Source of the DNA: Prasinococcaceae sp. CCMP 1430
Taxonomy: Eukaryota; Plantae; Prasinodermophyta
DNA: 64,000 nt
Direction: 5' to 3'
Assembly (NCBI GenBank): GCA_013416795.1
Contig: RQSC01000009.1
Span: 1 to 64,000, forward strand
Position 1 is the stretch's first letter. The number at the start of each line of letters is the position of its first letter. The translations under genes were made by a program, and so were the position numbers. This document shows positions 4,375 to 58,524 of the stretch, piece by piece. The notes beneath the pieces are model-generated. The model was not told the DNA's origin and did not search any database. It saw only the letters and a list, made by a program, of their open reading frames with translations.

Positions 4375-6152
4375 TCATCCGAAGAGGCGGAAAGTGTTGT
4401 CGCTGCCCGCGGTAATGAGCGAGCCGCTCGAGTCGAAGACGCACGCCTGCACGGCATCCTCGTGACCCTCGAGCTCCCTGACGAGCTCGAGCCCTCCAGC
4501 ATCGAGCGAATACACCTTCACGGTCGCGTCGTCGCTGGCGACCGCCAGCACCTCGCCCGAGCGGTCGAAGCAGCACTTGTTCGCCGGGTGCGAGCCCGCC
4601 TCGGCGCTGGCGCGCTCGGCCACCATGCGCACGTCCCAAAGCTTGACCACGCCGTCCGCATCGGTGGAGGCCACCGTGTCGGCCTGGGCGTTGAACGCCA
4701 CGTGGTTGCACGAGTTGAGGTGGCCATAGAAGGTCTGCACGCACAGGCCCGAGCGTGCATCCCACAGGCTGACGGTCTTGTCGCTCGAGCCCGTGCACAG
4801 CGTGTTGGTGCAAGGCATCCACGCGAGCGCGTTGACGCTGTCCACGTGCCCTCTGAAAGTCTGCCGGCAGCGCGCGGCCGTGAGGTCCCAGAGCCTCGCG
4901 CTGTGATCCAGCGAGCAGCTGGCCACAAAGTCGCCGCACTCGTGCATCGCCACGTCCCACACCGCCTGCGTGTGCTCTGACAGCGTCAGAACGCAACGGC
5001 TTGCCTCGAAGTCCCACAGCTTGACCGTGCAGTCGCCCGAGCTGCTCACCAGGTGCGCTCCGCGCGGATGAAAGTCCACGCCGCTCACCCAGTCGCGGTG
5101 GCCGTCGCCGCTCATTATGAGCTCGCCACCGGGCAGCCCCCACATCTTCCACGAGCGGTCGTCGCTCGCCGTCGCCACGATGGGCTTCTTCGGATGCATG
5201 ACCACGGATGACACGCTCATCAGGTGGCCCTTGAACGTCTTGCGCAGAGCCAGGCGCGAGGCCTCCACAGGCGGCACGATCGCGTACGCATGTGGGTTGT
5301 CGCGCGTATCGGGAGGCAGCGACGCGCCCCCCCTGAGCGTCTTGCCGCCAGCTTTGCCACCGCGGCTCGCGGCAGGCGCTTTGCCGCCCTGCATGCCCCC
5401 GCTGCCACCTCTCGCCACGTCCTTCTCGGCCCGCGCCGCCTGCTGCTGCTGTGCTCCCGCCGCACCGCCACCAGGGAGTGACTTCATGGTGCTCTCCATG
5501 GCCTCGACCTTTTGCACCATGCGGTCGCGCTCGAGGGTCGCCAGCATTTTCTCCTTCATTGCCGCCTCGTACTTGTGCCGCAGCTCCTTGATGGTTGGCT
5601 CGTACTGAGCATAGTGCGCCTTGAGCCGCTTCAGGTCCGTCACGAGCTTGTTCTTCTCCTGGCCCACGCGCCTGTGCTGCATGCGATGGAAGTCACGCTC
5701 CTTTCGGAACTTGTCCCACGTGCTCGTCGCCTTCGCCGCAATGGCCTTGGCCGCACCGAGCTCGGCGTTGAGCGCGCGCGCGGCGTCCTCGAGCTCCTGG
5801 TTCTTCATGTACACGTCGGGCACGGCGCCAACCTGCCCGTTGTCGATCTGGCCCTGCGTACCGAGCTCGTACCACTCAGTCTCGAACGTCTCTAATGTGC
5901 GGTGCATGCCCATCCTCACCAGGAAGTTGCGAATGAAATCGTCGACCACCTCTGGCAGCCTGGTGACGCGCGTGGACGTGCCGTCCTCCTCGGGACCGGC
6001 CGCGCTCGGACCGGCGTCACCGCCGGCGTTCGGCGGCTGCAGCGAGCGCAGCGCGGCCTCCAAGTCCTCGCTCGCCGCGTCATCGTCGTCAGCCTCCTCC
6101 ACCTCCACCTCCTCGTACACAAAGTCGTCGTCATCATCAGACAGGACCACCT
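4375..6152 (-). CDS. PF20: Flagellar central-pair WD40 protein PF20/SPAG16; first exon uncertain (candidate ATG near 6405)
   Basis: Acidic N-terminus, PEVVDDFIRNFLVRMGMHRTLETFETEWYE, coiled coil ERDFHRMQHRRVGQEKNKL, then about 7 WD40 repeats. CAG acceptor at 6153-6155. Confidence 0.9.
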
Positions 6153-7907
6153 CTGCGGGCGCACACGGCAGAGCGCGCGAGCGGCGCCGCACATGGGCGT
6201 GGCGCGGGCGTGCGTCGGGCGGATGTGCGCCGCGGCAGACGCGCGGGTGCAGGGCGGAGGCCACAAAGGCAGCGCAGTCAGTGTCGACGCTGGCGCTCGG
6301 GGGCAGCCGGCAGCTCGCAGCGGGCTGGCGCTTCCGGCGCGCTCCCCGGCCGCCTCGCTGCGGCGCGGCGCCGCGGCTCCGCCTCGCGCGCGCCTCGGTT
6401 TCCATTTCCCTCTTTCCGTTTCGTTCCGGAGCGCTCGCACGCGCAGAGCCCACGCGATGCGCGCGCGCGTGCGGCCCCGCACGGCCCGCGGCGCAGCGCC
6501 CGCGGCTGCCCGGTTCGGCAGCACACGCAGCCCCTCCGCGATGGGGCGAGCGCTCCGCCGCGGCGGCACGCGACCNCGGGTGACGCGGCCCCCTCCCCCC
6601 TCCCCCCCCAGGGGCCACAGCAGGCGATCGGGGAACGCGGCCGTGCCGAAAGCGGCTCCGGCTCCCCTGGCTGCCGCGGCCCGGGCCTGGCAATGGCACA
6701 CACACAGCAGGGAGTTCGATGCCCACGGGAGAGCTCCGTATGGACTGACAGATGAGGTCCCATGCCAACCTGGATGATGGCGCCGTGAGCAGCAGCAGCA
6801 GTGATGCGTGCGCGCGTGCGGGCCACCCACACGTTGCTCGGCGCGCCAATCATTTCGCCCCTCGGGCGCGGCGGCGCGCGCGCGCGCCGCGCGCGGCGGC
6901 GGCGCCACTCGCGGCCTCGGCCCCTACTTTGACCGAGGGAATCGCGCCGCGCGCGGGAAATCGCCGCAAAAGAAAAAGAAAAAGAAAAAGAAAAAACCTG
7001 ATGCGACCGGCGTGGGCGCGTGGGCACGCTCCACGCCGCAGGTTCGTTCGCATTCGAAGCGGACGACGACGCGCGGTACCAAAAAAAAAACAAAAGGGGT
7101 GGAAAAGGACGCCGCTCCAAAAAAAAAAAAAAAAGAGCTGTTGCGCCCCGCCGCCGCTTTTTGTGCGCGCAGCAGCGCCGAGGGGCCAGAGCGCGCGCGC
7201 GACGGCGCGCACCCTCCCCCCCTTTCCCCCTTTCCCCCCTTCCACCCCCCCATTCCCTGTGGGCGGGGAGGTCGGTGGCGAGGCGGAGGAGGAAGAGCGC
7301 GCCCGGCGGCGCCGGCCAGGGCGGGAGAAATGGCCAAGCGCGGCCGAGCAGCCGACGGCGCGCCGCAGTCGCCCACGGGGAGGTGCGGGCGCGCGCGCTT
7401 CGAACGCGCGAGGCGCGGGCGTGCGGGCGGCAGGGGAAGGCGGTGGGGGGGCGGGGGCGGCTGCGCGCGTGGTCTTGGGGCGGCGTGGGCGAGGTGGTGG
7501 CGGCGGGGAATGACGCGCTTGTCGACCTGTGATGGGTCCGGGCTCGCGCACGTGCGCGGTATCGCGCCGCGACTCGCCCCTCGCTCACTCGACGGGGCGC
7601 GAGTGCGGGCATCCGGAGCGTACGGTCCCGAAGCCGCCGCGGGCCAGGGGGCCGGCGCGCGCGCAACGAGCGGGGTGGGCCACCGCACCCTGGCGCCTGG
7701 GAAGGGCGAAACCGCCGCGCCGCAGCGGCGCAAAACGCAAGCCCCCGCCCCTGCGCTCGCTTGCGCACGCGGGTGGGTGGGTGGGTGGGGGGTGAAGTGC
7801 GCTCCACGCGATCCGCGGGCATCGCAGAAGTGCTGGTGCGCGCCAATTCGCCCGTCCAGACGAGCGCGGCCGCCCCGCGCATCGCGCTGCCGCGCGCTGT
7901 GCGCTCC

Positions 7908-9209
7908 ATGCTCGCGCTGACATTCGCGTTCAGAAGGGGCCTGGCCTCGCGCCTCTCCGGCGCCATCTCCGGTCTGCTCGGGAAGAGCCCGATGGCCGGT
8001 GACGGCGGCGCAGTACACACGCCGGTGCACGCCAGGCGCAAGCGCGCGTCGGGCGATGGCGCGCCGGACAGCTTAATTACGTCCGCGAAGAAGCGCCCGC
8101 GCGTGGACTACGACATGTCGACTCCGCCGCCGATAATGTCGCCTCTGGTTGGGGACGACGAGACGCCCGAGGCGACGCTGCCCGCAGTCGCCCACACAAT
8201 GCTCCCGACGGTCGAGAAGAGACAGAGGAGTCGCCTATCGACGCTCTTCTCCCCTGTGTTCAACGCGTTGGGGCTCGTGGCGTCAGGCGACGAGGAGAAG
8301 GCCGTGCAGCTGGGTGCAGAGGCTATGCTGAGCCCCGGCGTGCACGTGACGACCACCAGTCCGGCGAGCGTCGCCACGGGCGAGGACGGGACGCCTGGGG
8401 ACACGGCGACGGAAGCGGGGGGGTACGTGGACGTCAGCGCGGAGCCAGAGGTGCTAGAGGGAGAGCTAGATGACGAGGATGGCGCTAGGGAGGATGGTGA
8501 GGAGCAGGACGAGGGGCAGTACGAAGACGACGACTATGAGGACGAGGGCGAGTTCGATCCGTACTACTTCATCAAGTGCCTGCCCCCGGTCGAGACCATC
8601 ACGCTGCCGCACCCGCCCCTCCAGAACGCGCCGCGCACGCGCCGCAACAAAAAGATGTGCCTGGTGCTCGACCTCGACGAGACGCTGGTGCACAGCACGA
8701 TGGAGGCGCCTGGAAACGAGGACTTCTCATTCCCGGTCTTTTTCAACAACCAGAGCCACCAGGTGTACGTGCGCAAGCGCCCGCACGTGATGGAGTTTCT
8801 CACCAAGGTTGCGAAGATGTTCGAGGTGGTGGTGTTCACCGCGAGCGCCAAGGTGTACGCTGAGCAGCTGCTGGACATCCTCGATCCCAAGAAAGAGCTG
8901 ATTCGCCAGCGAGTGTACCGCGACAGTTGCGTGTACGTGGAGGGCAATTATCTGAAGGACCTGCGCGTGCTGGGCCGCGATCTGAGCCAGCTGGCGATCG
9001 TGGACAACTCTCCGCAGGCCTTCGGCTTCCAGATCGACAACGGCATCCCCATCGAGTCGTGGTTCGACGACATGAGGGACACCGCGCTGCTCGAGCTTCT
9101 GCCATTCCTCGAGAAGCTCGCGAAGGCGCACGACATCCGCCCGCTGATCCGCAAGCATTTCAAGCTACACCAGGTGATCAAACGCTCGAGGCCGACCGCG
9201 CGGTACTGA
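7908..9209 (+). CDS. SCP1-like small CTD phosphatase (NIF/FCP1 HAD domain, CTDSPL2-like)
   Basis: Motifs: LVLDLDETLVHS (DxDxT), VRKRP, VFTAS, YLKDLRVLGRDL, IVDNSP, NGIPIESWFDD. Confidence 0.92.
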   Translation: MLALTFAFRRGLASRLSGAISGLLGKSPMAGDGGAVHTPVHARRKRASGDGAPDSLITSAKKRPRVDYDMSTPPPIMSPLVGDDETPEATLPAVAHTMLPTVEKRQRSRLSTLFSPVFNALGLVASGDEEKAVQLGAEAMLSPGVHVTTTSPASVATGEDGTPGDTATEAGGYVDVSAEPEVLEGELDDEDGAREDGEEQDEGQYEDDDYEDEGEFDPYYFIKCLPPVETITLPHPPLQNAPRTRRNKKMCLVLDLDETLVHSTMEAPGNEDFSFPVFFNNQSHQVYVRKRPHVMEFLTKVAKMFEVVVFTASAKVYAEQLLDILDPKKELIRQRVYRDSCVYVEGNYLKDLRVLGRDLSQLAIVDNSPQAFGFQIDNGIPIESWFDDMRDTALLELLPFLEKLAKAHDIRPLIRKHFKLHQVIKRSRPTARY

Positions 9210-9570
9210 AGGGCCGGGCGGCGGCTCCCAGCAAGCGCATGGCCAAGCGGCGCTTTGAGGCACGCGTTGTACGAGAGCGGCACCAGTGCGAGGCATGTGA
9301 CGTCTCGTGCTCGAGCGACACGCACCCCGCGGCGCAGGAGCGCGGGTGCGTTGAGATGGAGCTCTTGTTTGCTCGCACATGCGGCCCTGGCTGTTAAAAG
9401 ACATATGAGCAAGGGCATCGTGACGCGAAACGTTGTGCACGCGCTGCGCGTGCGCCCGCCGCCACACCGCGCGCGCCGCGGCTCCGAGGCGCGCTGCCGC
9501 GAGCGCGCGGCGCGTGCCGCGCGCAGGGGCGCGCGGCGCGCTGCGCCCCTCCCCACCCTGGGCGTCCGCC

Positions 9571-30450: not shown

Positions 30451-32086
30451 TCGCCGCATTGTAACTTGTGTCTCATACGCGTGGCGGCCGCCGGTGCGTG
30501 CCCGACCGCCGCGTCTGCCGCCGCGCGGCCGCGCGGCTTCGCGCACGCAGCGCGCCGCTGTCACATCGCCCGCGAACGCGAAACGACGGGCGCCCCCATC
30601 AAAATGCAAAGAGATCAAAATGCAAAGAGTCGTTCGACCCAGCGGCCGTCGAGGACCGTTTCTGCCGGGTCCCTCTCGCCAATCTCCCATGGATCGATGG
30701 AGGCGCGGGATCGCGCGGCAGGTCCATGTTGAGGTGGGCGAGAGGGCCCCGAAACGCCCCTCGGCGGCGCCTGGATCGCAGCGAGCTGGATGTACTCGCC
30801 GCCCAAAAATTGCAACACCTCACATTTTGAGTCGAACACTAGTCGAACACTAGCTAGTCCAGTTAATAGTAGGGGCGGCGAGGCTGCGACGACGAGCGAG
30901 GGGCGCGCGGCGCATAGTGCGCTCGTGCATCGTACTTGCTCTCGATTGTCGTCGGCGCGCGCGCTTGTTGTCGTCGTCGCGCGACGGTCAGTCGCCGCGC
31001 AGCAGCGCGAGCAGCCCGACGGCCTTGGCCTCTTGGTTGCCGCCGCCGAGCATGCGCTCGATGGCCGCCACGACGCCGGCCTGCGCGCGCACGGCGTCGC
31101 GCGCCTCGCGCCCCGCAGCGCGCCCGCCCCGCCGCTGCCAACGCCCGCGCCGCCGCTCCGGCGGGGCCCGCCAGCCACTCGGCCTGGTCCGCGGATTCCA
31201 TGCTTACTCTGCGCAACCGCGCCGCGCCTATCGAATCCGCACGGTCTGAAGCTGCGTGTGTTCTGCTTGCGCGGAGCGCTGCGCCGCAGCAAAGCGCGCC
31301 TCCACCCTGACCGAATCCGTTCCCCCCGGCCCGGCGCCCGCAGGCGAGCGCTCGCGCTCATTTGTGTGCGCCATGCGCCCGGGCGGTTGCTTTGCTGCGC
31401 GCAGGCGCGGAGGTACGCTGGCAGCGGGGGGGGCGACCTGGCAGGAGTAGTGCCCCCGCGCCTCCAGCCCGCCTCCGGCCGCGGCCGCGACGGGGCCGCT
31501 GTGCCGCGCGCCTTCCGGCCACAGCCCGGGGCGCAACTTCCTACTACTTCCGCCGCCAGCCAGCGGGGCGGGCGCATTCCTCCGCCCCCCCTGCCGCTGC
31601 GCCACGCTCGCGCCGCCCTGGCTGGCGTCGGTCGGGGAACGGACGCGGGCCCGAGCCCGGCGTCCTCCCCGCGCACACACCTGCCCCCCGCCCGCCCCTC
31701 CCCATTCTCTCACCTTGGCGCAGGCCCACGCAGGTGTGGACGGGGCCCCCGCGCACGTGATGGTGTTTTTGCGTCCCGACGTGCGTGCACGTCTGTGCGG
31801 CCGTCGTGGCACCTCGACCAGCCAGCTGGCAGCCGGGGTGGCGGCTGGCTGGCCTGGCTTTGGCTTGCCCGGCTGGACGGGGCGAAAAACGCGATTCGCC
31901 CGCGCGCGCTTTTCGTCCCTCCGCGATTGCGCGATTGTGCGCGCCCGCCCTTTTTGTGGCATTTCCCTTATCGGGATCGATCGCCCTCTGGCGAGATTTG
32001 CGGCTCGGGGGCGCCCCGCCGCGCGGGCCCGCCGTGGGGGCCGATTTTGATTCGCGCGCGGGCGCGGGAGCGCGCGGGAGCGCGCG

Positions 32087-32892
32087 NNNNNNNNNNNNNN
32101 NNNNNNNNNNNNNNNNNNNNNNNNNNNNNNNNNNNNNNNNNNNNNNNNNNNNNNNNNNNNNNNNNNNNNNNNNNNNNNNNNNNNNNNNNNNNNNNNNNNN
32201 NNNNNNNNNNNNNNNNNNNNNNNNNNNNNNNNNNNNNNNNNNNNNNNNNNNNNNNNNNNNNNNNNNNNNNNNNNNNNNNNNNNNNNNNNNNNNNNNNNNN
32301 NNNNNNNNNNNNNNNNNNNNNNNNNNNNNNNNNNNNNNNNNNNNNNNNNNNNNNNNNNNNNNNNNNNNNNNNNNNNNNNNNNNNNNNNNNNNNNNNNNNN
32401 NNNNNNNNNNNNNNNNNNNNNNNNNNNNNNNNNNNNNNNNNNNNNNNNNNNNNNNNNNNNNNNNNNNNNNNNNNNNNNNNNNNNNNNNNNNNNNNNNNNN
32501 NNNNNNNNNNNNNNNNNNNNNNNNNNNNNNNNNNNNNNNNNNNNNNNNNNNNNNNNNNNNNNNNNNNNNNNNNNNNNNNNNNNNNNNNNNNNNNNNNNNN
32601 NNNNNNNNNNNNNNNNNNNNNNNNNNNNNNNNNNNNNNNNNNNNNNNNNNNNNNNNNNNNNNNNNNNNNNNNNNNNNNNNNNNNNNNNNNNNNNNNNNNN
32701 NNNNNNNNNNNNNNNNNNNNNNNNNNNNNNNNNNNNNNNNNNNNNNNNNNNNNNNNNNNNNNNNNNNNNNNNNNNNNNNNNNNNNNNNNNNNNNNNNNNN
32801 NNNNNNNNNNNNNNNNNNNNNNNNNNNNNNNNNNNNNNNNNNNNNNNNNNNNNNNNNNNNNNNNNNNNNNNNNNNNNNNNNNNNNNNNNNNN
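32087..32892. other. Assembly gap (N-run), probably hiding the first exon(s) of Fd-GOGAT
   Basis: Run of N. Confidence 0.97.
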
Positions 32893-33006
32893 GACCGGCG
32901 CGGGCGCGCGCGCACCCTCGCCAGCCGCGCGCCGCTAACCCCGCCGCCGCCCGCGCACACAAACGCGAACGAACGAACGAACGGACGCGCGCGCCTCCGC
33001 GCGCAG

Positions 33007-39899: not shown

Positions 39900-40000
39900 C
39901 CCGGGGCCCGCGGCGTCGACGGCGGTCGCGTTCCGCCTCCTGCTGGTGGCCCTCGAAGCAGCGAACCTGCCCCTGCGCGCGATGCGCGCACCGCGCGCGG

Positions 40001-40594
40001 NNNNNNNNNNNNNNNNNNNNNNNNNNNNNNNNNNNNNNNNNNNNNNNNNNNNNNNNNNNNNNNNNNNNNNNNNNNNNNNNNNNNNNNNNNNNNNNNNNNN
40101 NNNNNNNNNNNNNNNNNNNNNNNNNNNNNNNNNNNNNNNNNNNNNNNNNNNNNNNNNNNNNNNNNNNNNNNNNNNNNNNNNNNNNNNNNNNNNNNNNNNN
40201 NNNNNNNNNNNNNNNNNNNNNNNNNNNNNNNNNNNNNNNNNNNNNNNNNNNNNNNNNNNNNNNNNNNNNNNNNNNNNNNNNNNNNNNNNNNNNNNNNNNN
40301 NNNNNNNNNNNNNNNNNNNNNNNNNNNNNNNNNNNNNNNNNNNNNNNNNNNNNNNNNNNNNNNNNNNNNNNNNNNNNNNNNNNNNNNNNNNNNNNNNNNN
40401 NNNNNNNNNNNNNNNNNNNNNNNNNNNNNNNNNNNNNNNNNNNNNNNNNNNNNNNNNNNNNNNNNNNNNNNNNNNNNNNNNNNNNNNNNNNNNNNNNNNN
40501 NNNNNNNNNNNNNNNNNNNNNNNNNNNNNNNNNNNNNNNNNNNNNNNNNNNNNNNNNNNNNNNNNNNNNNNNNNNNNNNNNNNNNNNNNNNNNG
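40001..40594. other. Assembly gap (N-run)
   Basis: Run of N. Confidence 0.97.
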
Positions 40595-41803
40595 GAAAAA
40601 AAAAAAAAAAAAACGCAGAGCACTTTCGATTCGGAAGCGGGCCTTTTCCTTTTCGCCCCTTTTCGTTTTCGCGCGGGGCTCCGTCCGAAAACCCGAACCG
40701 TTCCGCCGCGTGCCGGGGCCGACGCCCGCCGCGCGGCGGCAGCGAAATATCCGCCCCCGCGGCGGGAGCGGGCGCAACGTCGAATATCGAGTAAACAAGC
40801 GACGGGAAAGGCATCCAGCCAGCATTTTGTGTCGAACCCTGATTTGCGAAGGGGGGTGAGAGAAACCCATACTCGGGCGTTTGGAAAAAACAGCGGGTCG
40901 GAAGCGCGCGCGTTCGCCCCCGCGGCGAAGCGGGCTTCGGTCGGTCGGTTGGGACGGTGTCCAGCCGGCCAGGCGCCGCCTGCGCTTCCTTGGGCTCGGA
41001 TCCGTGCGTGGGCCCGGGCGCGCGCGGGAGCGCGCCGCGCGCGCGCCGCCGGACAAGGCCGCCGACCCGGAAGTGCCGGCGCCCCGGCCGGGCAGTGCCC
41101 GACCGAGAAATCGGCGTGGCAAATCTGAGCGCGCGACTGGCCGACCAACCAACCACGGGCTCAACCCACCGAGAGTACCTTCACCCGCCATGCGGCCCGG
41201 GCTGCGACGATCGATCAGACCTCCGCCCGGCCGGATCGGGGTGTGGTGTGCCCCTTCGGTTTTCGCCCGCCTTCGCACGTGGTGGATTCCGCCCCCACGT
41301 GGGGTACACGTTCCCCCACGAGCATGCACGGGGCGCATCACACGTTCACATGCATGCAGCTGACGCTGCTGACTCAGAGTATCCCGTGGTTCGCATATAC
41401 GTCGAAGCCCATGAGATCATCACGAGAGCGCGGCGCTGCCCTCCTTCGGAGTTCGGTGGCACGTGTACTGTACTGGACACGCACGCTGCGCGCGCGGCCT
41501 GAAGCTTCTGCCTTTGGACAGCGGGGAGGCCAGCCGAGGCGGCCCACTGTTTTTCCTGCGCGGATTTTCGGCGGATATTTGCGTGCGGAAATACAAAACA
41601 AATTCGGAGCAGGAAAAAAGCGCAGCATCAAACAAACCCTGGATCCGGAACGGACGGTTTGAACCCTTAAACCCAAACCGAAAGGCCACGTCAGCGCCGG
41701 CGCGCGGCGCGGCGCGGCGCGGCGCAGTGCGGCGCGACGGCGCGTGGGTGGCGCGCGGCGACTCGTGGGCGCGCACGCCGCGCGCGCGCGGGGAGAGGGG
41801 GGA

Positions 41804-50905: not shown

Positions 50906-52719
50906 TCAGACTCGCTCGACGACGAGGTAGCAGTGCACGTAATCCATGTGGTATTCCTCGGGATTAGCGGCGACGCGCGCCTCGTACATGCCGAACATGC
51001 GGTCGACGATTGCCGCGCGCTCCTCCGCGGGCCGCGTCGCATCCAGCGCGTTCGCAAAGGTCGAGTTGGACCAAGTGCGCATCGTGGGGACGAAGTCGCG
51101 GGCGTGCGTCGCGCTATCCTGGGCCTCGCCGCGCTCCTTCGCGGCGAGATACTCGTCGAGGTACGGGCAGCGCACCACTCGCTCCTCGCACGACACCTGG
51201 GGGGGGGGGGCGCACGGGCAGGAGGACGGGGGGGGGTAGCGCCGAGGGAGGGGGCGTGCACAACGAAGGGAGGTCAGCCACGCCGCACGATCGCTGGCAG
51301 GGCACAGCACCCTGGTCACTTCAGCACGACCTTGAGCGTAACCCAACCCAAAGTTGGGTTCGCGCGCGCGTGGGTCCTGCCCCAAGGCGGATGACGTACC
51401 ACGCGCAGGCCCTCGAATGTGCCATCGGCCTCTTCGAAAGGCGCCAGCGTCTCCGCCATGGTCTTGTAGTGGTTGGGGAACGTGCATGCGGCGAACTCGG
51501 CCTCGGTGATGGTGCCGTCATCCACCAGCTCGCGCCACAGCTCGGCGAAGGTGGAGTACATGTTGGCACCGCGGTCGGTGTTGCCGAGGTAGTACCCTTC
51601 GGTGCTCTCGCAGAAGTTGACGAACACGAAGCGCCCGCCGAGCGCCAGCTCGGCGGAGCGCCGCTTGAGGATGCTCCGCCAGTCCTGCTGCGACTGTGGG
51701 GTGCGAGCCGACGCCACGCCACAGCGCACGCAGCGCGGCGGGACGGAGGCGTCAGCGCGCAGAGCGGCGGCACCGCGCCGGATCGAGCTCAGCCGCGCGA
51801 GCGCACGCGACCGCAGGACGCGCGCGCGCAAAGGAGGGTAAGAGGGGCACGCACCTGCGCCATGAACTTGGCTTTCTCATCGGGCTCGGCCTGCGTGGAG
51901 TGCAGCGTCGCCTGCAGGTCGCACGGCAGCTTGCTGAGCCAGTGCATGGCGGTGAAGCTCATGCCCACCTGCACCGAGGCCGTCGGGTAGCATTGCTCGT
52001 AGAACGACGTGCCGCTGGCCGTCACGAACACGTTCGAGTGCTCCTCGGTGTACACTGGCACGCCCGGCAGCCGCTGCGTGCCCTGCGTGTAGTTGAAGAG
52101 CGACTTCCACTCGTTGAACGGCTGGTCCTCGTATTGGACGAGAACCTCGGTGTCGTCGCCTAGGCGCTCCCGGATCGCCGAGATGGCGCGGCCCATCAGT
52201 GGCATGGACGTGCCGCCGTCGGCAGTTCCGAAGTCGGCGAGCGCGAAAGGCGCCCCCGCGGCGGGCGCGGGTGCGGCGGCGACCGCATCGAGCACGAGGT
52301 CGCTCGCGTTCGCGATGACGTCGAAGCAGCCCTTGGTCGCCTTGCTGTAAAGGCCGTCGCCGTCCTCCCCGAGGGGCTCGTGGTGCGCGCGCTGTCGTCG
52401 GGCGCGACGATTAGAGCGCGCGATGGGGGGAGGGGGGGGGGCGTAAGCGCAGGGCGCAGCGGGCGTCAGCGGCGCAATCCCCTCGACGCGCACGCTCGGG
52501 GAGCGATTCTCCCCGCGCCCAGTCCCAAGTCACAGCCGCGCCACGCCTTGCCGGGAAAGCGCCGCGCCGCCGCACCTCCGTGGCCGCCGCCGCCGCCGCC
52601 GCAGCGCGCGCGCGCGCGCGCGCGCGCGCGCGCGCGCGGCCGCCGGCGCACTTTTCGCCTGCCGTTCGATGACGCGATACCAATGCCGTTCTACCTCGTG
52701 CAATCGTGCGGGCCCGCAT
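50906..52719 (-). CDS. SABATH-family (Methyltransf_7) SAM-dependent methyltransferase, 4 exons, transit-peptide-like N-terminus
   Basis: Phase-0 exons 52719-52576, 52391-51855, 51693-51400, 51196-50906. Motifs: LADFGTADGGTS, YEDQPFNEW, GTSFYEQCYP, SFTAMHWLS, DWRSILKRRSAELALGG. Confidence 0.9.
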
Positions 52720-52858
52720 CGCGATCGATGCGTACTACATTTCCACTCTGGTCAAACGAAGCCACGGGAGATCCCAACTCGCCAATTTCCTCGAGGGCCG
52801 CGGCGCTCCCTGAAGGAAGGATGCGTCGTGCTGCTCGATCGACGCCGCGCGTGTGCCG
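52720..52858. promoter_or_regulatory. Putative bidirectional promoter
   Basis: Short, less GC-rich spacer between divergent ATGs (52719 minus; 52821 or 52859 plus). Confidence 0.5.
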
Positions 52859-55776
52859 ATGCTCGCCACCGCGCCTGGGATGCGCATCGGCGCGCTCTCG
52901 GCGCGCGCGCCGCGCGCCGCTGCGGGTGCGTGCGAGTGCGTGCGAGTGCGCACGCGCGCGTCCTCTTGCCGGAGTGTGTCTGGACGTTTCCGGCCACCGC
53001 CGAGGAGCGCGTCGTCGGCCCGCCGCCCCGGCCGCCGCTGCCGCCGCCGCGTGAGGTGTGTCCCGTGCCGATCACCCCCCCACGCACGCACGCGCGCCAC
53101 GTCTCGCTCGAGAGCATCGCGGCGGGGGCTGGCCAAGGCCGCCGCGCGCATCGGTGCACTTTTTCACTCGCTTTCCACTTTGTGTGGCTTGCGCTGTTCG
53201 CTTTTCGCTTTTTCTTATCCAGTCGGTGACGTGGCCTTCGCAGGGCTCGGGGAGGGGCGTGGCGGTTGGCGCGGCGCGCGCGGGCGCGAGTGGCACGCGC
53301 CGCGCGCGCGCGCAGCGGCGCGGGCGGCCGCGGAGCTCAGGGGCCGCGCAGGCCGGGCGCGGTCGCGGAGAGCGCGTTCGGCATCGCCGACGTGGGGGCA
53401 GAAGAGGGCGCAGAGGATGCGGTCGCTCCCGGCGCATCGGCGAGCCCGCTGGTGCTCAAGTATCCCGGGCCGGCCAACTCGACGCTGTTCGTCGGCAACG
53501 ACGGCCCGCTGTCGACGGACCAACCCGGCAACGGCGGCCTGCGCCTGCTGTCCTACGACACCGAGGCCGACGCCATCCACGAGTGCATCCATCTCACCCA
53601 GGGCATGACCAAGAAGCACGCCGTGTACAACACCGGCTTCGGCGGCGCCAAGCTGGTGGTGCATGCCCCGAACGGGCCCCAGTCGGTCGACAAGAAGGAG
53701 CTCATGGAGGTGGTCGCCTCCTCGCTCAAGGGGCTCAACGGCACGGTCTACACCGGCCAGGACCTGAACACCTCCGCGGACGACATGGACTACCTGGACG
53801 AGCTCTGCGACTACGTGCTGGCCAGCATCGGCAGCGTCACCGACGCCAACGTCGCCACCGCGCACGGAGTCTTCGGCGCGGTGCAAGGGACGCTGCAGGG
53901 CGTGGGGCGCGACGTCGCCGGTGGCTCGTTCTTCGTGCACGGCTGCGGCAAGGTCGGCAGCTCACTCGCGCGGCAGCTCGTCGCCGCTGGGGCGGCGAAG
54001 GTGCTCACATACGACATCAACTCAGAGCTCGCGAGCATACCCGGCTGCGTGAACGTGTCGGACAGCGGCGACGACTGGGTGGCCCACGCGTCGCAGTGCG
54101 ACATGCTCTGCCCTTGCTCGATTTCCTGGCTGCTCACCGAGGAGGTCGTCGCCGGCCTCGACTGCGAGCTCATCGTCGGGGCGGCCAACCTGCCCTTCGC
54201 GACGCCCGCGGCGCGTGAGGCTGCGACGGCCAAGGGGATCCTTTTCGTGCCCGAGTCGGTGGCGAGCGCCGGCGCGGTGATTGTCGACTCGCTCGAGTGC
54301 TTCGACCGCGCGGCGTACCTCAGCGCCCGCCCGTCTGAGGTGTATGCGTTCACGCGCCACCTGACGCGCGAGGGGGCGCGCTCGGTGGCGGCCGCCGCCA
54401 CGTCGTCCGCAGCGGGGGGGGTGGCGTCGCCCGAGGAGGTCGACGCGCTCGTCGCTGACCTCAGCGCGAGCTCCGCGCGGAAAACGCCCGCGTGCGCCCG
54501 CTTTCGCGAGTGGCGCGACGAGGCCGTCGTGCAGCTCGATTCGCTCGTCATCGGCGGCGGCATGGCTGGCACGGCCGCTGCGATGGAGCTGGCGCGCCTC
54601 AGCCCCCCTGGTTCGCGCATGATGCTGCTCGAATCGCGCACGGTCGCCAACGACGCTGCCTCGAGCTTCGGCGAATCGCGCATGTTCCGCCGCATGTACT
54701 CGGACGAGTACTTCTCGAAGATGCAGGCGACCGCCCTCGACATGTGGCGCGAGCTCGAGGAGGCGAGCGGCGAGGAGCTGCTTTCCACCAATGGTCTGCT
54801 CTTCTACGGCGAGACAGACACCGGCGAGACCGTGGAGGGGTCCGTGCCGGGCGCGCGGGAGGTGATGGAGAACCTGGGGATCGAGCACGAGTACTTCGTC
54901 GGCGAGGAGCTCGACAAGCGCTGGCCAAACCTCGTGAGCGGCTCGAGCGACGAGGGCGTCTTCGAGCACGCCGCCGGGAGCGTGAACTCGAGCGCCGCGT
55001 GCGCCGCCATGGCCGCGCGGGCGCAGGCGAGCGGCGTGGAGCTCGTCCAGGGCGAACGCGTCACGGACATGTGGAAGGACGCCGACGGCGCCGACGGTGT
55101 GCTGGTGGCCACCTCGAACGGCCGCCTGCTGCGCGCCAAGAGCGTCGTGCTGTGCGCCGGCGCATGGACAAACGACCTGCTCAAGCCGCTGGGCGTGCAG
55201 CTCGACCTCGAGGTCCACAACATGCACTGGGGACACTTCGAGGTCGAAGATGGCGCCGACATTCCGCAGTGGTTTTGCTTCCGCAAGGAGAAGAACGACT
55301 CCCCCGACGACGACCCCGCCAAGCTCGACGGTGGCTTGTACTACGGCTTCCCCAGGCACCACGAGGGCTCGACCGTCGTCAAGGTGGGCGTCGATTGGTG
55401 CCCTGACACCAGCAAGTTCCGCACGAAGAGCATGGCCGAGTTCTGCTACGAGCCCGACGAGCACGTCGTCAGCTGCATCGAAAGCTTCCTCGCCGAGAAC
55501 TGGACGGGCATCGGCAAGCTCAGCGACATGCAATGCTCGCCGTACACGATGACCAAGGACCAGTACTTCATCCTCGACCGCTTGGAGAAGGTGCCCGAGG
55601 TCACCGTCTTCACCGGCGGGAACGGGCGCGCCTTCAAGTTCGCGCCCCTCATCGGGAAGCTGCTGGCCGAGCTCGCCACCGGCGTGCCCAAGGAGCAGCT
55701 CAGCTACGACGTGGCGCCGTTCGCGGCCGGGCGACAGGCGGCCGGCATGACCGACGTCGAAGAGGTCTGCGCCTGA
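52859..55776 (+). CDS. Fusion: Glu/Leu/Phe/Val amino-acid dehydrogenase + MSOX/PIPOX/NikD-type FAD amine oxidase; 5' exon uncertain
   Basis: Uninterrupted frame 53245-55776. DH domain: NGGLR, GMTKK, GGAK, TGQDLNT, TAHGV, HGCGKVG, CPCS, VGAAN, GILFVPE. Oxidase domain: IGGGMAG, SSFGESRMFRRMY, CAGAW, CSPYTMTKDQYFILD, NGRAFKFAPLIG. Candidate exon 1 52859-53055 splices in phase to 53244. Confidence 0.88.
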
Positions 55777-56221
55777 GGAGGCCCCCGGGCACACCGACTG
55801 TACAGGTACCAAGAAGACAGACACGGGCGGCGCTGTTGCCGGCAATACCACGTGTCACTGTAAATCACTCACCCCTTGCTAACAAGGCGGCCACGGACAG
55901 GGGCGACGGCGCCATCGCCGGCGAGCCAGCGCTCGCGCCCCGCGCCTGGCGCTCGCGCGCAGCACGAAGACGGTCGCATTCGCTCCTCTGGGCGCGTATG
56001 AGTACTACCGGTCATGCATGGATGTAGCAGTACTATGCACGCGTGCTGCGCCTGCGTAGCAGTGCCTCGCGTGCGTGGACCGTGGACGTCCGGCGCGGGC
56101 GCGAGCGCGTCGAGTGCGGGCTCGGGTGGCGGGCCAGTGGCCCCTCCGTCGGCCAGCACTCGCGCGCCCCAGCAGTTGGTTGGAGCGCAGCGCGTCGCTC
56201 CTCACCGCTGTCTCCTTCGCT

Positions 56222-58044
56222 CTAATGCTGCTTGCCAAAGCCGGCCTTTATGGCCTGCTGCGTCCCCCACACGAGCTTGTCCAGCAGGCTCGCGAGGGTG
56301 AAGCATCCTCCGACGATGGCCATGAGGTTGGTCAAGTAGTCGGCGAGCGGTTGCCTCTTCTCCTCGATGACCACCTGGAACGGCGACGGCACGAAGCTGA
56401 TGCGAACCGAGCTCAGCTCACTCGACTCGTACTGGTGGCTGTGCGCAGTCGTGTCGTAGAGGTCGATGGAGAAGTCGCCCTTTTCGACCGTTTGCAGCAC
56501 GGCATTAATGTAGTGCTCGAAGGTCACGTTGTCCGTGCGAGCAGTGAAAGGAGTGTCGACGAAGCGCGCGCTCCACTCCTGCCACTCGCCCCCGTCTGGG
56601 CCTCTCACAAGCGACCTCACCTCGGCCTTGTCGTCTTCGGTGAGCTCGTGGCCGAACGTCAGGTGGTGCACGGTGTGGCTCAGGTTGAGGTGCACGTTGT
56701 TGAACGAGTGCCCCACGGCGTGGGCGCCCAGCTCGATCGTGCCGGGCACCTTCTTCACCATCACGTAGCCATCCAGGCGGCAGCCGATCGCCGCGGAGTC
56801 GTGCTTGACGAGCTGTGCCAGCGCGCCGCGGCGCTGGCGCTTCGTTGCTGACCCGCCTGGGGCTGTTGGATCCTCGTCGCCCACGATACCATCGATGAAC
56901 TTGGTCACCGCGTCGGTCGTCCGATCGCCCATGAACATCTCAGTCTTGCGCGACGCGCCGTCGGCGCGAAAGACGCGGATCGTCGGAAATCCCTGGATGC
57001 CCTCTTGTGAGCAGAAGCGCTGGTGGGCGACGCAGTCCACGCGCGCGATGACGACCTTCCGGTCCCCGTACTTCTGCTTGGCGATGCCGGCCGTGTGCTC
57101 CCACACGGGGAGGAGCATCTTGCACCACGCGCACCATTTCGCCATGTACGCGACCATGACGAGGGGCGCGCTCTTCGTCGCGGCTCCGTGCGTCTCCGGC
57201 GTGAGCTCGAGCGAGTGCTCGTCGACGAGCTGCTCCACCATGTCCTCGTCCTCGTACAGATAGTCGGCGGTCCCGTCCTCATCCGTCGCGGCCTGCACCA
57301 TTTTCACCTCGAGCTCTGCGAACGCGGGGTCCGACTGACGATAGGTGGGCGACAGGCGATCGACGTACTTCTCGCCCTCAGAACCGTCCGCGTACAGCCG
57401 CGTCTTGCGCACCGTCTTCGCGCCGAACGTGGACACGCCGTCCACGTTGAGGCGGTGGCTGCCAATCGCGTTGCTCACATCGAGCGTGGCAAACTCGCAC
57501 GCCAGCTCGGGGAAGCTCACCTGGGCGCGCACGAGCGAGACAAGGGAGGCGCGGGGGACGTCAGCACGCGCGAAAGTGCGATGGGTCGCGTGCCCCGAGC
57601 CATCGGACCGGGCCGACGCGCGGGTGCCGGGCGCGCGCGCGCGCGCGCGCGGGAGCCGCCCACCTTGAAGTTGATCGGCAGCACATCGCCGTTGAGGGAC
57701 TTGTCGACGACGATCGACTGCGCGACACCATGACGGTGCGGCGCGTGCACCCGGTGTGCAGCAGAGGGCAACAGAAATACGGGAGGGGCACCGCGCGCGC
57801 CACGCGAGCGAGCGCGTCAGCGCAAGTAGAGAGTCCGCGGGGGCAGCGCCTGCCAGTAGCGCACGCGCTCGCGCACCGTGGTCGCGTGTGACGAGAGGTA
57901 CGACCTCGTCTCGCCGCCGACAAGGAAGGCCACGGCGAACGCCGCCGCGGTGGTGAGCGCCGCGCCCGCGAGCGTCGACTCGCTCAGGTCGCGCGGCAGC
58001 TTCTTGTAGACGTCCAGCGCGCGCATGCCATCGAGTATGCCCAT
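56222..58044 (-). CDS. PDI-C / PDIL5-type protein (ERGIC_N + thioredoxin + COPII-coated ERV domain), 3 exons
   Basis: Exons 58044-57877, 57717-57664, 57520-56222. Motifs: LDVYKKLPRDL, FPELACEFATLDVS, AKWCAWC, IQGFPTIR, GCRLDG..VKKVPG, NLSHTVHHLTFG, AIVGGCFT, C-terminal GKQH. Confidence 0.92.
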
Positions 58045-58524
58045 CGCGCCCGCGCGCCCCAGGCGGGGGCCCGCGCCGCTCGCGCGCCGAGTGGCGTCGC
58101 GCCGCGCTGCCAACACCCCCGCGCGCGTGCAGACGCTCCGGCCCATTTCGCACGTGCATTGCGTCCATCTTGATGGTTGATGGTGCGGTCCTGTTGCGGG
58201 TCAGATTCGTTCCAGCACCCCCCCCTGCAAGAAAACGCTCTCAGCACCCCCTTTGGGTTAGATTGTTTGAGGTTTATGGCCTTCGCCCTTCGGGCGAAGG
58301 CCAATTTGAATGGATTGTGAAAAGCGATCCACATTAGAACATATATGTAGACCCTTCAGCGGCGACCGAGCAGGCGGAGGAGGCGACGACGAAGCGCCGC
58401 GCTCGAAGGCGGGAGCGGATGGCGAGCGAGGCGAGGAACAATGCGGAGCGTGGCCACAGGGTCGTCGCCACGCTTCCCTACCCGGGCGGAAAAGACGTCA
58501 CGGTCGACGTCGGCCTGAGTTCGC

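Follow-up and report, generated by a model that had tools for sequence, protein, structure and literature searches.

What could an amino-acid dehydrogenase and a flavin-dependent amine oxidase accomplish as one polypeptide in a green-lineage alga? This question is raised by a fusion gene of Prasinococcaceae sp. CCMP 1430, which lies on the plus strand at 53230-55776 within the first 64,000 nucleotides (nt) of contig RQSC01000009.1 (GCA_013416795.1), a stretch hereafter referred to as the window. Based on sequence comparison, we consider it rather probable that the fusion protein, together with a methyltransferase encoded by the divergently oriented neighboring gene, makes homarine (N-methylpicolinate) from L-lysine. 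With the same moderate confidence, this gene pair and a cyanobacterial operon of methyltransferase (MT), dehydrogenase (DH), and oxidase (Ox) genes, MT-DH-Ox(-BCCT), in which a BCCT transporter gene may follow, are regarded as the missing homarine pathway of marine phytoplankton, proceeding via an ELFV-type L-lysine alpha-dehydrogenase, which would be the first one known, and a picolinate synthase resembling NikD in primary metabolism.

In the proposed mechanism, the N-terminal ELFV dehydrogenase domain would remove the alpha-amino group of lysine with NAD+ to give 6-amino-2-oxohexanoate, whose spontaneous ring closure would yield piperideine-2-carboxylate, an unstable cyclic imine. The flavin oxidase at the C-terminus, packed on the dehydrogenase, would act in the manner of NikD and oxidize this imine twice with O2 to picolinate, and a SABATH methyltransferase would then methylate the ring nitrogen with S-adenosylmethionine (SAM) to afford the betaine homarine, a compatible solute. 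The three-enzyme module was found from picocyanobacteria to diatoms.

Both domains are encoded on one intron-free mRNA

The fusion gene was delimited by the following features.

53230-55776, plus strand: dehydrogenase-oxidase fusion gene, open frame (preceding stop codon 53227-53229; TGA stop codon 55774-55776)
53342-55885, plus strand: stretch over which the mRNA contigs run without a break; poly(A) is added at 55885

Read from 53266 to the TGA codon at 55774-55776, the frame comprised 836 codons, and Pfam detected ELFV_dehydrog_N (residues 86-177), ELFV_dehydrog (276-380), and DAO (426-803) in the fusion frame, each above its curated cut-off. Since chance long frames are common in DNA of the composition of the window (approximately 70% GC), the frame alone proves little, and it is the domain matches and the RNA that prove the gene. 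An antisense open frame of 609 codons (54022-55851, minus strand), which overlaps the fusion gene and is typical of 70% GC DNA, was without support. Three RNA contigs of 2593, 2520, and 2394 nt, derived from three metatranscriptome runs of two studies, matched the fusion gene with approximately 99.7% identity and zero joints, and one of them terminated in a poly(A) run at 55885. Because these contigs were unbroken over 53342-55885, a single mRNA without introns carries both domains, and the linker did not arise in assembly.

An earlier description made from the letters of the window alone (the sequence-only reading) had claimed a single intron-free frame holding both domains joined by an Ala/Ser linker, and had named a misassembled junction or two separate transcripts as the findings that would speak against it. 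The Pfam domains in one frame and the RNA contigs crossing the junction without a break bore out this claim, the Ala/Ser string was located at 54388-54420, and the motifs quoted at that time (NGGLR, TGQDLNT, PESVAS, CSPYT, and NGRAFKF) were found in the protein. The gene start placed at 53245 did not hold, as the frame opens at 53230 and contains no in-frame ATG from the stop codon at 53227-53229 up to 53605, a position already inside the dehydrogenase domain. One RNA contig bore 27 extra letters at its 5' end ahead of 53342, and the extra 5' letters of the RNA contigs matched nowhere in the window even with gaps allowed. Owing to the lack of an in-frame ATG and to these 27 letters absent from the window, we conclude that this assembly lacks the first exon or the start codon of the fusion gene or has it in another form. 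In a relative with 69% identity, the Arg/Ala-rich presequence aligned in frame from 53272. Residue numbers given below for the protein (K67, K79, and so on) count along window positions 53416-55773.

An artefact, namely a misassembled gene pair or a chance frame in 70% GC DNA, would be in keeping with the missing start codon and with the ease with which long spurious frames such as the antisense one arise. We attach practically no probability to it, however, given the independent RNA contigs across the junction and the full-length orthologues in many assemblies.

The fusion is widespread in algae and is predicted to be compact

A search with the whole protein returned at least 30 clusters having both domains at 39-69% identity, and a profile search with the oxidase yielded many more fusion clusters than the whole-protein search. 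The named sources included Dunaliella salina, a pedinophyte, Pycnococcus provasolii, and Chloropicon roscoffensis, as well as Pseudo-nitzschia heimii, Cylindrotheca closterium, Cyclotella atomus, and Tribonema minus, and a cluster of 68 fusion proteins in the ESM Atlas was mostly haptophyte where the phylum was known. The fusion occurs in green algae, diatoms, xanthophytes, and haptophytes, and is by no means a one-off, a point missed in the sequence-only reading.

An AlphaFold model of the fusion, built with an alignment of 23 sequences, had a mean predicted local distance difference test score (pLDDT) of 87.9 and a predicted template modeling score (pTM) of 0.85. The region between the domains was modeled as follows.

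54331-54525, plus strand: inter-domain connector with predicted helices at residues 306-331, 339-354, and 359-370 (block pLDDT 70-88), holding the Ala/Ser string

The model suggests a connector made up largely of helices in place of a floppy tether, which would fit a fixed, compact two-domain enzyme. Channeling of a cyclic imine between the fused domains, as inferred in the sequence-only reading, would be consistent with such a compact model, which is no proof of it.

The dehydrogenase domain has an Asn/Asp pocket

The features of the N-terminal domain are listed below, with glutamate dehydrogenase (GluDH) and leucine dehydrogenase (LeuDH) as references.

53449-54450, plus strand: ELFV-type NAD-dependent amino-acid dehydrogenase domain of the Asn/Asp-signature clade (Pfam, PDB matches, Foldseek, and tree)
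53530-53532, plus strand: Asn39, side-chain pocket, equivalent to GluDH Lys89 and LeuDH Leu40 (clade alignment)
54286-54288, plus strand: Asp291, floor of the side-chain pocket, equivalent to GluDH Ser380 and LeuDH Val294 (clade alignment)

The domain scored 32.0 bits against PF02812 (gathering threshold 25.3) and 57 bits against PF00208 (23.4). Its closest solved relatives in the PDB were the phenylalanine dehydrogenase (PheDH) from Rhodococcus and several LeuDHs, with E-values of about 1e-32 and 26-28% identity, and Foldseek matched it to PheDH with a template modeling (TM) score of 0.84. The catalytic K79, the carboxylate-binding K67, D116, N258, the GCGKVG motif, and the acidic D200 were invariant in the 23 aligned sequences, in line with the earlier statement that the lysines of GMTxK and GGAK and the GxGxxG fold are retained. 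The domain thus shares with the Leu and Phe dehydrogenases the two-domain fold, both lysines, the active-site Asp and Asn, and the NAD-type Rossmann motif.

The side-chain specificity positions of the ELFV family, namely Lys89 and Ser380 in GluDH and Leu40 and Val294 in LeuDH, were examined by using an exhaustive profile search in place of a word-based search with the dehydrogenase domain alone, which had given ten matches, mostly fusion fragments. The pocket columns were read from the 150 best matches, aligned to the clade model. Almost every high-scoring protein covering both positions, fused or stand-alone, had Asn and Asp there; Asn39 was shared by every member of the clade whose sequence reaches this position, and Asp291 by all 23 fusion proteins in the alignment and by nearly all clade members that stand alone. 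Canonical Leu/Val/Phe-type sequences had Leu, Ile, Val, Ala, or Phe in these columns, and a GluDH-like control in the same alignment showed Lys and Ser, which indicated that the columns were correctly chosen. The hydrophobic residues expected of a Leu, Val, or Phe dehydrogenase at the Leu40 and Val294 positions were hence absent, Asn and Asp standing in their place, and the score against the tryptophan dehydrogenase ScyB model (NF035922) was 90.5 bits, below its equivalog cut-off of 600. In the tree, the Asn/Asp clade was split from the Leu/Val/Phe outgroups by a long branch (98% SH-aLRT), and the algal dehydrogenase domains clustered together, beside Okeania/Dapis and a Shewanella protein. 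With the catalytic residues kept and both specificity positions changed, the altered substrate specificity foreseen in the sequence-only reading found support. The acidic pocket floor suggests a cationic side chain, for which lysine would be the obvious candidate and ornithine the alternative, and we propose from these residues that the domain is an L-lysine alpha-dehydrogenase. No ELFV enzyme deaminating the alpha-amino group of lysine turned up in the literature searched, the coverage of which was incomplete.

The oxidase domain retains NikD-like active-site acids

NikD catalyzes the four-electron oxidation of lysine-derived piperideine-2-carboxylate to picolinate. The C-terminal domain was compared with NikD, monomeric sarcosine oxidase (MSOX), and N-methyltryptophan oxidase (MTOX), which gave the following assignments.

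54499-55755, plus strand: FAD-dependent amine oxidase domain with an MSOX/NikD fold (Pfam DAO, 2e-42; NikD and MSOX matches; Foldseek)
54679-54690, plus strand: Arg422 and Arg425, equivalent to NikD Arg50/Arg53 and MSOX Arg49/Arg52 (carboxylate binding); invariant
54835-54837, plus strand: Glu474, equivalent to NikD Glu101, MSOX having Ser in this column; invariant
55381-55395, plus strand: Lys656, equivalent to MSOX Lys265, and Asp660, equivalent to NikD Asp276 (MSOX His269); invariant
55534-55539, plus strand: Cys707-Ser708, flavin-attachment region, Ser708 aligning with MSOX Cys315
55627-55638, plus strand: Arg738, equivalent to NikD Trp355 and MSOX His345, and Lys741, equivalent to NikD Lys358 and MSOX Lys348 (alignment)

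Among solved proteins, NikD was matched better than MSOX both by the single sequence (1e-37 vs 1e-31) and by the family profile (5e-54 vs 7.5e-50). The Foldseek fold search on the oxidase domain did not separate the two (TM 0.86-0.87 for NikD vs 0.86 for MSOX), and the link to NikD therefore rests on the conserved active-site residues. Those retained are Arg53 and Lys358 (the carboxylate clamp), Tyr258, Glu101, and Asp276, of which Glu101 and Asp276 set NikD apart from MSOX. NikD, with which the sequence-only reading had suggested comparing the active site, proved an apt reference, being the best solved relative by sequence and having these five residues in common with the algal domain. As for MSOX and MTOX, the fold (TM 0.85-0.86) and the equivalents of Arg49/Arg52, Lys265, and Lys348 are kept, whereas their diagnostic residues His269, His345, and Cys315 are Asp, Arg, and Ser in the algal oxidase; the NCBIfam scores for MSOX (195.8 bits vs a cut-off of 257) and MTOX (168.6 vs 479.65) were both below the cut-offs.

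The flavin-attachment region gave a mixed outcome for the claim that CSPYT lies near the position of the covalent-FAD Cys of MSOX: the motif is present, and yet the residue at the MSOX Cys315 position is the nearly invariant Ser708, paired with it by the conserved x-Y-T motif. In the HMMER alignment, Cys707 was paired with NikD Cys321 only across a gap, and orthologues have Ala, Ser, Thr, Val, Met, or Ile in its place, the residue being replaced in diatoms, Tribonema, Dunaliella, Chloropicon, and picocyanobacteria. Because Cys707 is not conserved among the orthologues, the alignments suggest that covalent flavin attachment is probably not a trait of this oxidase family. On the basis of these residues, we place the domain in the MSOX/NikD superfamily as a member that has active-site acids of the NikD kind but is not a NikD orthologue, and we propose by analogy that it acts as a piperideine-2-carboxylate oxidase forming picolinate.

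With NikD, which acts together with NikC in the nikkomycin biosynthesis of Streptomyces tendae, the algal domain has the MSOX-type fold, the carboxylate clamp, Tyr258, Glu101, and Asp276 in common. It differs in having only 27% identity, an Arg for Trp355, and a flavin-attachment Cys not conserved in the family. The algal imine would, moreover, come from the fused NAD-dependent dehydrogenase and not from an aminotransferase like NikC, and the proposed pathway would lead to a primary osmolyte rather than to an antibiotic building block.

The most similar stand-alone cyanobacterial oxidases were considered as support and rejected, as they are found in ATP-binding cassette (ABC) uptake operons without a dehydrogenase or methyltransferase. 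Two of them (L006 and L009, each at 8001-9215 of its locus), approximately 43% identical to the algal domain, lie between two Peripla_BP_6-type ABC permease genes and have a Cys-Cys pair at the flavin-attachment motif; they probably form a sister group of catabolic enzymes whose substrate is an amine taken up by the importer.

Prokaryotic relatives are arranged as an MT-DH-Ox operon

On a Tara Oceans scaffold carrying a stand-alone dehydrogenase of the clade, the genes for methyltransferase, dehydrogenase, oxidase, and a BCCT transporter followed one another in this order with overlapping stops and starts. One genome per species (185,579 prokaryotic genomes) was then scanned for a clade signature peptide, which yielded 108 confirmed loci; 80 of these were retained. 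The clade alignment was used here because an earlier scan with a single low-GC (approximately 33%) metagenome protein, P0220, had returned zero matches, its back-translated patterns being uninformative. The 80 loci were tabulated with our own hidden Markov models, and those of Synechococcus WH7803 and Prochlorococcus MIT 9201 were checked by Pfam. Nearly all were from marine Synechococcus and Prochlorococcus, and all three genes were present in 68 of the 80. The arrangements were as follows.

Marine Synechococcus (including WH7803 and RCC307): MT-DH-Ox-BCCT
Prochlorococcus: MT-DH-Ox
Myxobacteria (three loci): MT-DH-Ox-BCCT
Okeania and Dapis: DH-MT, with the oxidase gene on the opposite strand
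Cyanobium group (eight loci): dehydrogenase alone
Actinomycetes (two): oxidase-dehydrogenase, without methyltransferase

BCCT carriers transport betaines and related solutes, and the presence of such a transporter gene in the operon points to a betaine-type compatible solute as the product. It stands directly after the synthesis genes in the Synechococcus and myxobacterial loci, so that the arrangement expected of a betaine cluster is found in these relatives and not in the window. In marine cyanobacteria, glycine betaine synthesis genes likewise cluster with an adjacent betaine transporter gene; the two systems have in common that genes for methyltransferase-based solute synthesis lie beside a transporter for the product class, while the enzymes and the solute are others, and the transporter here is of the BCCT type.

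Several loci departed from the common pattern. At the Cyanobium-group locus L079, the dehydrogenase gene (6899-8020) has a helicase gene and a spermidine-synthase-like gene as neighbors. The two actinomycete loci, L090 (2042-10449, Amycolatopsis sp. lyj-23) and L091 (Umezawaea tangerina), combine the oxidase with an Asn/Asp-clade dehydrogenase in the absence of the methyltransferase. In Amycolatopsis, the dehydrogenase is fused to a HAD hydrolase, and the pair adjoins genes for an OMP-decarboxylase-domain protein, a MazG/kinase-like protein, and an acyltransferase-ACP. The actinomycete pairs were considered as possible parts of a gene cluster for a picolinate-containing peptide, of which the surroundings in Amycolatopsis gave no clear sign. 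A Synechococcus-type operon with 51% identity to the query on a contig binned as Salipiger bermudensis (L044) is probably a binning error of a metagenome-assembled genome.

A fortuitous fusion of two enzymes with unrelated jobs, the dehydrogenase being of the ordinary branched-chain or aromatic amino-acid type, might be thought of because the closest solved structures are those of PheDH and LeuDH. It appears highly improbable to us, as distantly related algae have kept the fusion and bacteria have the genes together in operons, and as the dehydrogenase falls in a clade of its own, in which the polar pocket is invariant, and forms part of a compact model.

A SABATH methyltransferase gene is linked to the fusion

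In the window, the methyltransferase gene lies upstream of the fusion gene in the opposite orientation.

52576-52719, minus strand: methyltransferase exon 1, with the ATG at 52719 and a 48-codon Arg/Ala-rich presequence (the RNA end at 52393 continues into the exon; GT donor and AG acceptor checked)
51855-52391, minus strand: exon 2, the SAM-binding half of Methyltransf_7 (RNA; 53% identical to the Pycnococcus neighbor protein)
51400-51693, minus strand: exon 3 (RNA; 41% identity, colinear with Pycnococcus residues 194-296)
50906-51196, minus strand: exon 4, including the stop codon (RNA; 41% identity, colinear with Pycnococcus residues 298-390)
52720-53229, no strand assigned: GC-rich region between the divergent genes (no long RNA contig; GCC repeats draw short false matches)

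Two exon frames matched Pfam Methyltransf_7 (SABATH, PF03492) with 53.2 and 35.6 bits against 29.8, the introns defined by the RNA contigs were canonical, and the exons were compared with the Pycnococcus protein one at a time. The intergenic region is presumed to be a bidirectional promoter and may hide the first exon of the fusion gene. Both the methyltransferase (52576-52719, minus strand) and the fusion (53272-53450, plus strand) start with Arg/Ala-rich extensions without counterparts in the bacterial proteins, which may be organelle-targeting peptides.

The linkage of the two genes recurs in other organisms. They stand head to head in the window and in the diatom Cylindrotheca closterium, and in tandem in Pycnococcus, where the methyltransferase gene is directly upstream of the fusion. 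In Tribonema minus, the three activities form a single DH-Ox-MT protein with the methyltransferase at the C-terminus, 43% identical over the full length, and the same order is found in one polypeptide of the marine gammaproteobacterium Shewanella surugensis (P0232, 1170 amino acids). Other joined orders were MT-DH-Ox in environmental proteins and DH-MT in a Pterosperma transcript. In Chloropicon and in the pedinophyte, no methyltransferase was found within 10 kb of the fusion. Plant N-methyltransferases of the SABATH group, for example coffee trigonelline synthase, belong to the same Pfam family as the methyltransferase in the window and methylate the ring nitrogen of a pyridine carboxylate, the substrate being an isomer of picolinate; the algal and cyanobacterial enzymes differ from the plant ones in being closer to a bacterial fatty-acid O-methyltransferase.

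These arrangements also bear on a catabolic function, in which the oxidase would demethylate an N-methyl amino acid or oxidize pipecolate or proline and the dehydrogenase would deaminate the freed amino acid. The best NCBIfam matches of the two domains, N-methyltryptophan oxidase and tryptophan dehydrogenase, agree with such a role in kind, although both lie far below cut-off, and the occurrence of related cyanobacterial oxidases in uptake operons speaks in its favor as well. However, a SAM methyltransferase would have no sensible place in a fusion or an operon with demethylating enzymes, the fused order DH-Ox-MT is a biosynthetic one, the hydrophobic pocket residues of the Trp, Phe, and Leu dehydrogenases are replaced, and MSOX His269 is Asp as in NikD. 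We thus regard a catabolic fusion as improbable.

Homarine as the proposed product

The carriers of the operon or the fusion coincide with documented homarine producers (Synechococcus, diatoms, and a haptophyte). In the producer survey of 2021, which states that no homarine biosynthetic pathway has been characterized, homarine was present in both Synechococcus strains tested, including WH7803, as well as in four of six diatoms and in one Emiliania huxleyi strain (PMC8269262); the concentrations given there were later revised downward. The genome of Synechococcus WH7803 (L051) bears the MT-DH-Ox-BCCT operon, with the three enzyme genes at 5946-6980, 6932-8035, and 8035-9219 of the locus. Thalassiosira pseudonana likewise accumulates homarine (PMC12817926), and the prasinophytes tested so far were negative (PMC13236597). 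No protein named as from Micromonas or Ostreococcus, both of which are sequenced genera, was among the matches listed, which is weak negative evidence. No paper assigning genes to homarine synthesis was found in the literature searched, the incomplete coverage of which leaves room for a prior publication.

Several observations weigh against homarine synthesis. Regarding the oxidase, its identity to NikD is only 27%, with MSOX almost as close by sequence and fold, and the position of NikD Trp355, the residue stacking on picolinate in NikD, is occupied by Arg in every algal form, by Gln in those from cyanobacteria and myxobacteria, and by His in Streptomyces. The related cyanobacterial oxidases within amino-acid-type ABC importers look catabolic, and the oxidase family is thus not confined to the pathway. 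Regarding the methyltransferase, its nearest solved relative is a mycobacterial fatty-acid O-methyltransferase (2.6e-28), the plant SABATH enzymes being matched at 1e-14 or weaker. Sequence cannot decide between N- and O-methylation, both chemistries occurring in the SABATH family, and methylation of the ring nitrogen is putative. Regarding distribution, the eight Cyanobium-group loci, mostly from fresh water, hold the dehydrogenase with no methyltransferase or oxidase gene in the locus; Prochlorococcus carries the operon, and no report of its homarine production was found; and freshwater or terrestrial algae (Tribonema and Trebouxia) carry homologues, with no homarine report found for them. 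Finally, labeling in shrimp, in the accounts given in two later papers, pointed to quinolinate, or to glycine and succinyl-CoA, as the precursors (cited in PMC8269262 and PMC13236597).

Some of these points would be met by the same enzyme logic with another substrate or product, namely methyl picolinate, or a pyrroline- or pyrrole-2-carboxylate formed from ornithine or another diamino acid and then methylated. The O-methyltransferase as nearest solved relative and the loss of NikD Trp355 would agree with such a route, as would the Asn/Asp pocket, which indicates a cationic or polar side chain and not its length. The methyl ester is a live alternative product that fits the BCCT link poorly. In general, neither a neutral ester nor an N-methylpyrrole suits the BCCT transporter of the operon as well as a zwitterionic betaine does. 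Among the abundant betaines of Synechococcus and diatoms, homarine alone lacks known genes, and we know of no widespread pyrrole-carboxylate solute in these organisms. A different substrate or product, the main rival of homarine synthesis, thus seems possible but rather unlikely, and the conversion of lysine to homarine is the assignment that we retain.

Surroundings of the fusion gene

The product of the downstream neighbor gene (56222-58168, minus strand) combines a thioredoxin domain with a COPII-coated ERV (endoplasmic reticulum vesicle transporter) domain, which confirms a eukaryotic nuclear context for the fusion gene. Runs of N at 32000-33000 and 40000-40600, which are scaffold gaps far from the fusion, account for apparent low-GC islands in the window.

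Implications for marine homarine metabolism

Homarine is among the most abundant small nitrogen metabolites in ocean particles and functions as an osmolyte and signaling compound, with a bacterial turnover time of days to weeks. The genes for its bacterial breakdown were published only in 2026 (PMC13236597). If the assignment proposed here is true, marker genes for homarine synthesis would become available, with which metagenomes and metatranscriptomes would show who makes homarine, where, and when, and Pycnococcus, Chloropicon, some Prochlorococcus, and the present alga would be predicted as new producers. A lysine-specific member would also be added to the Glu/Leu/Phe/Val dehydrogenase family, and aromatization of the NikD type would shift from antibiotic synthesis to bulk primary metabolism.

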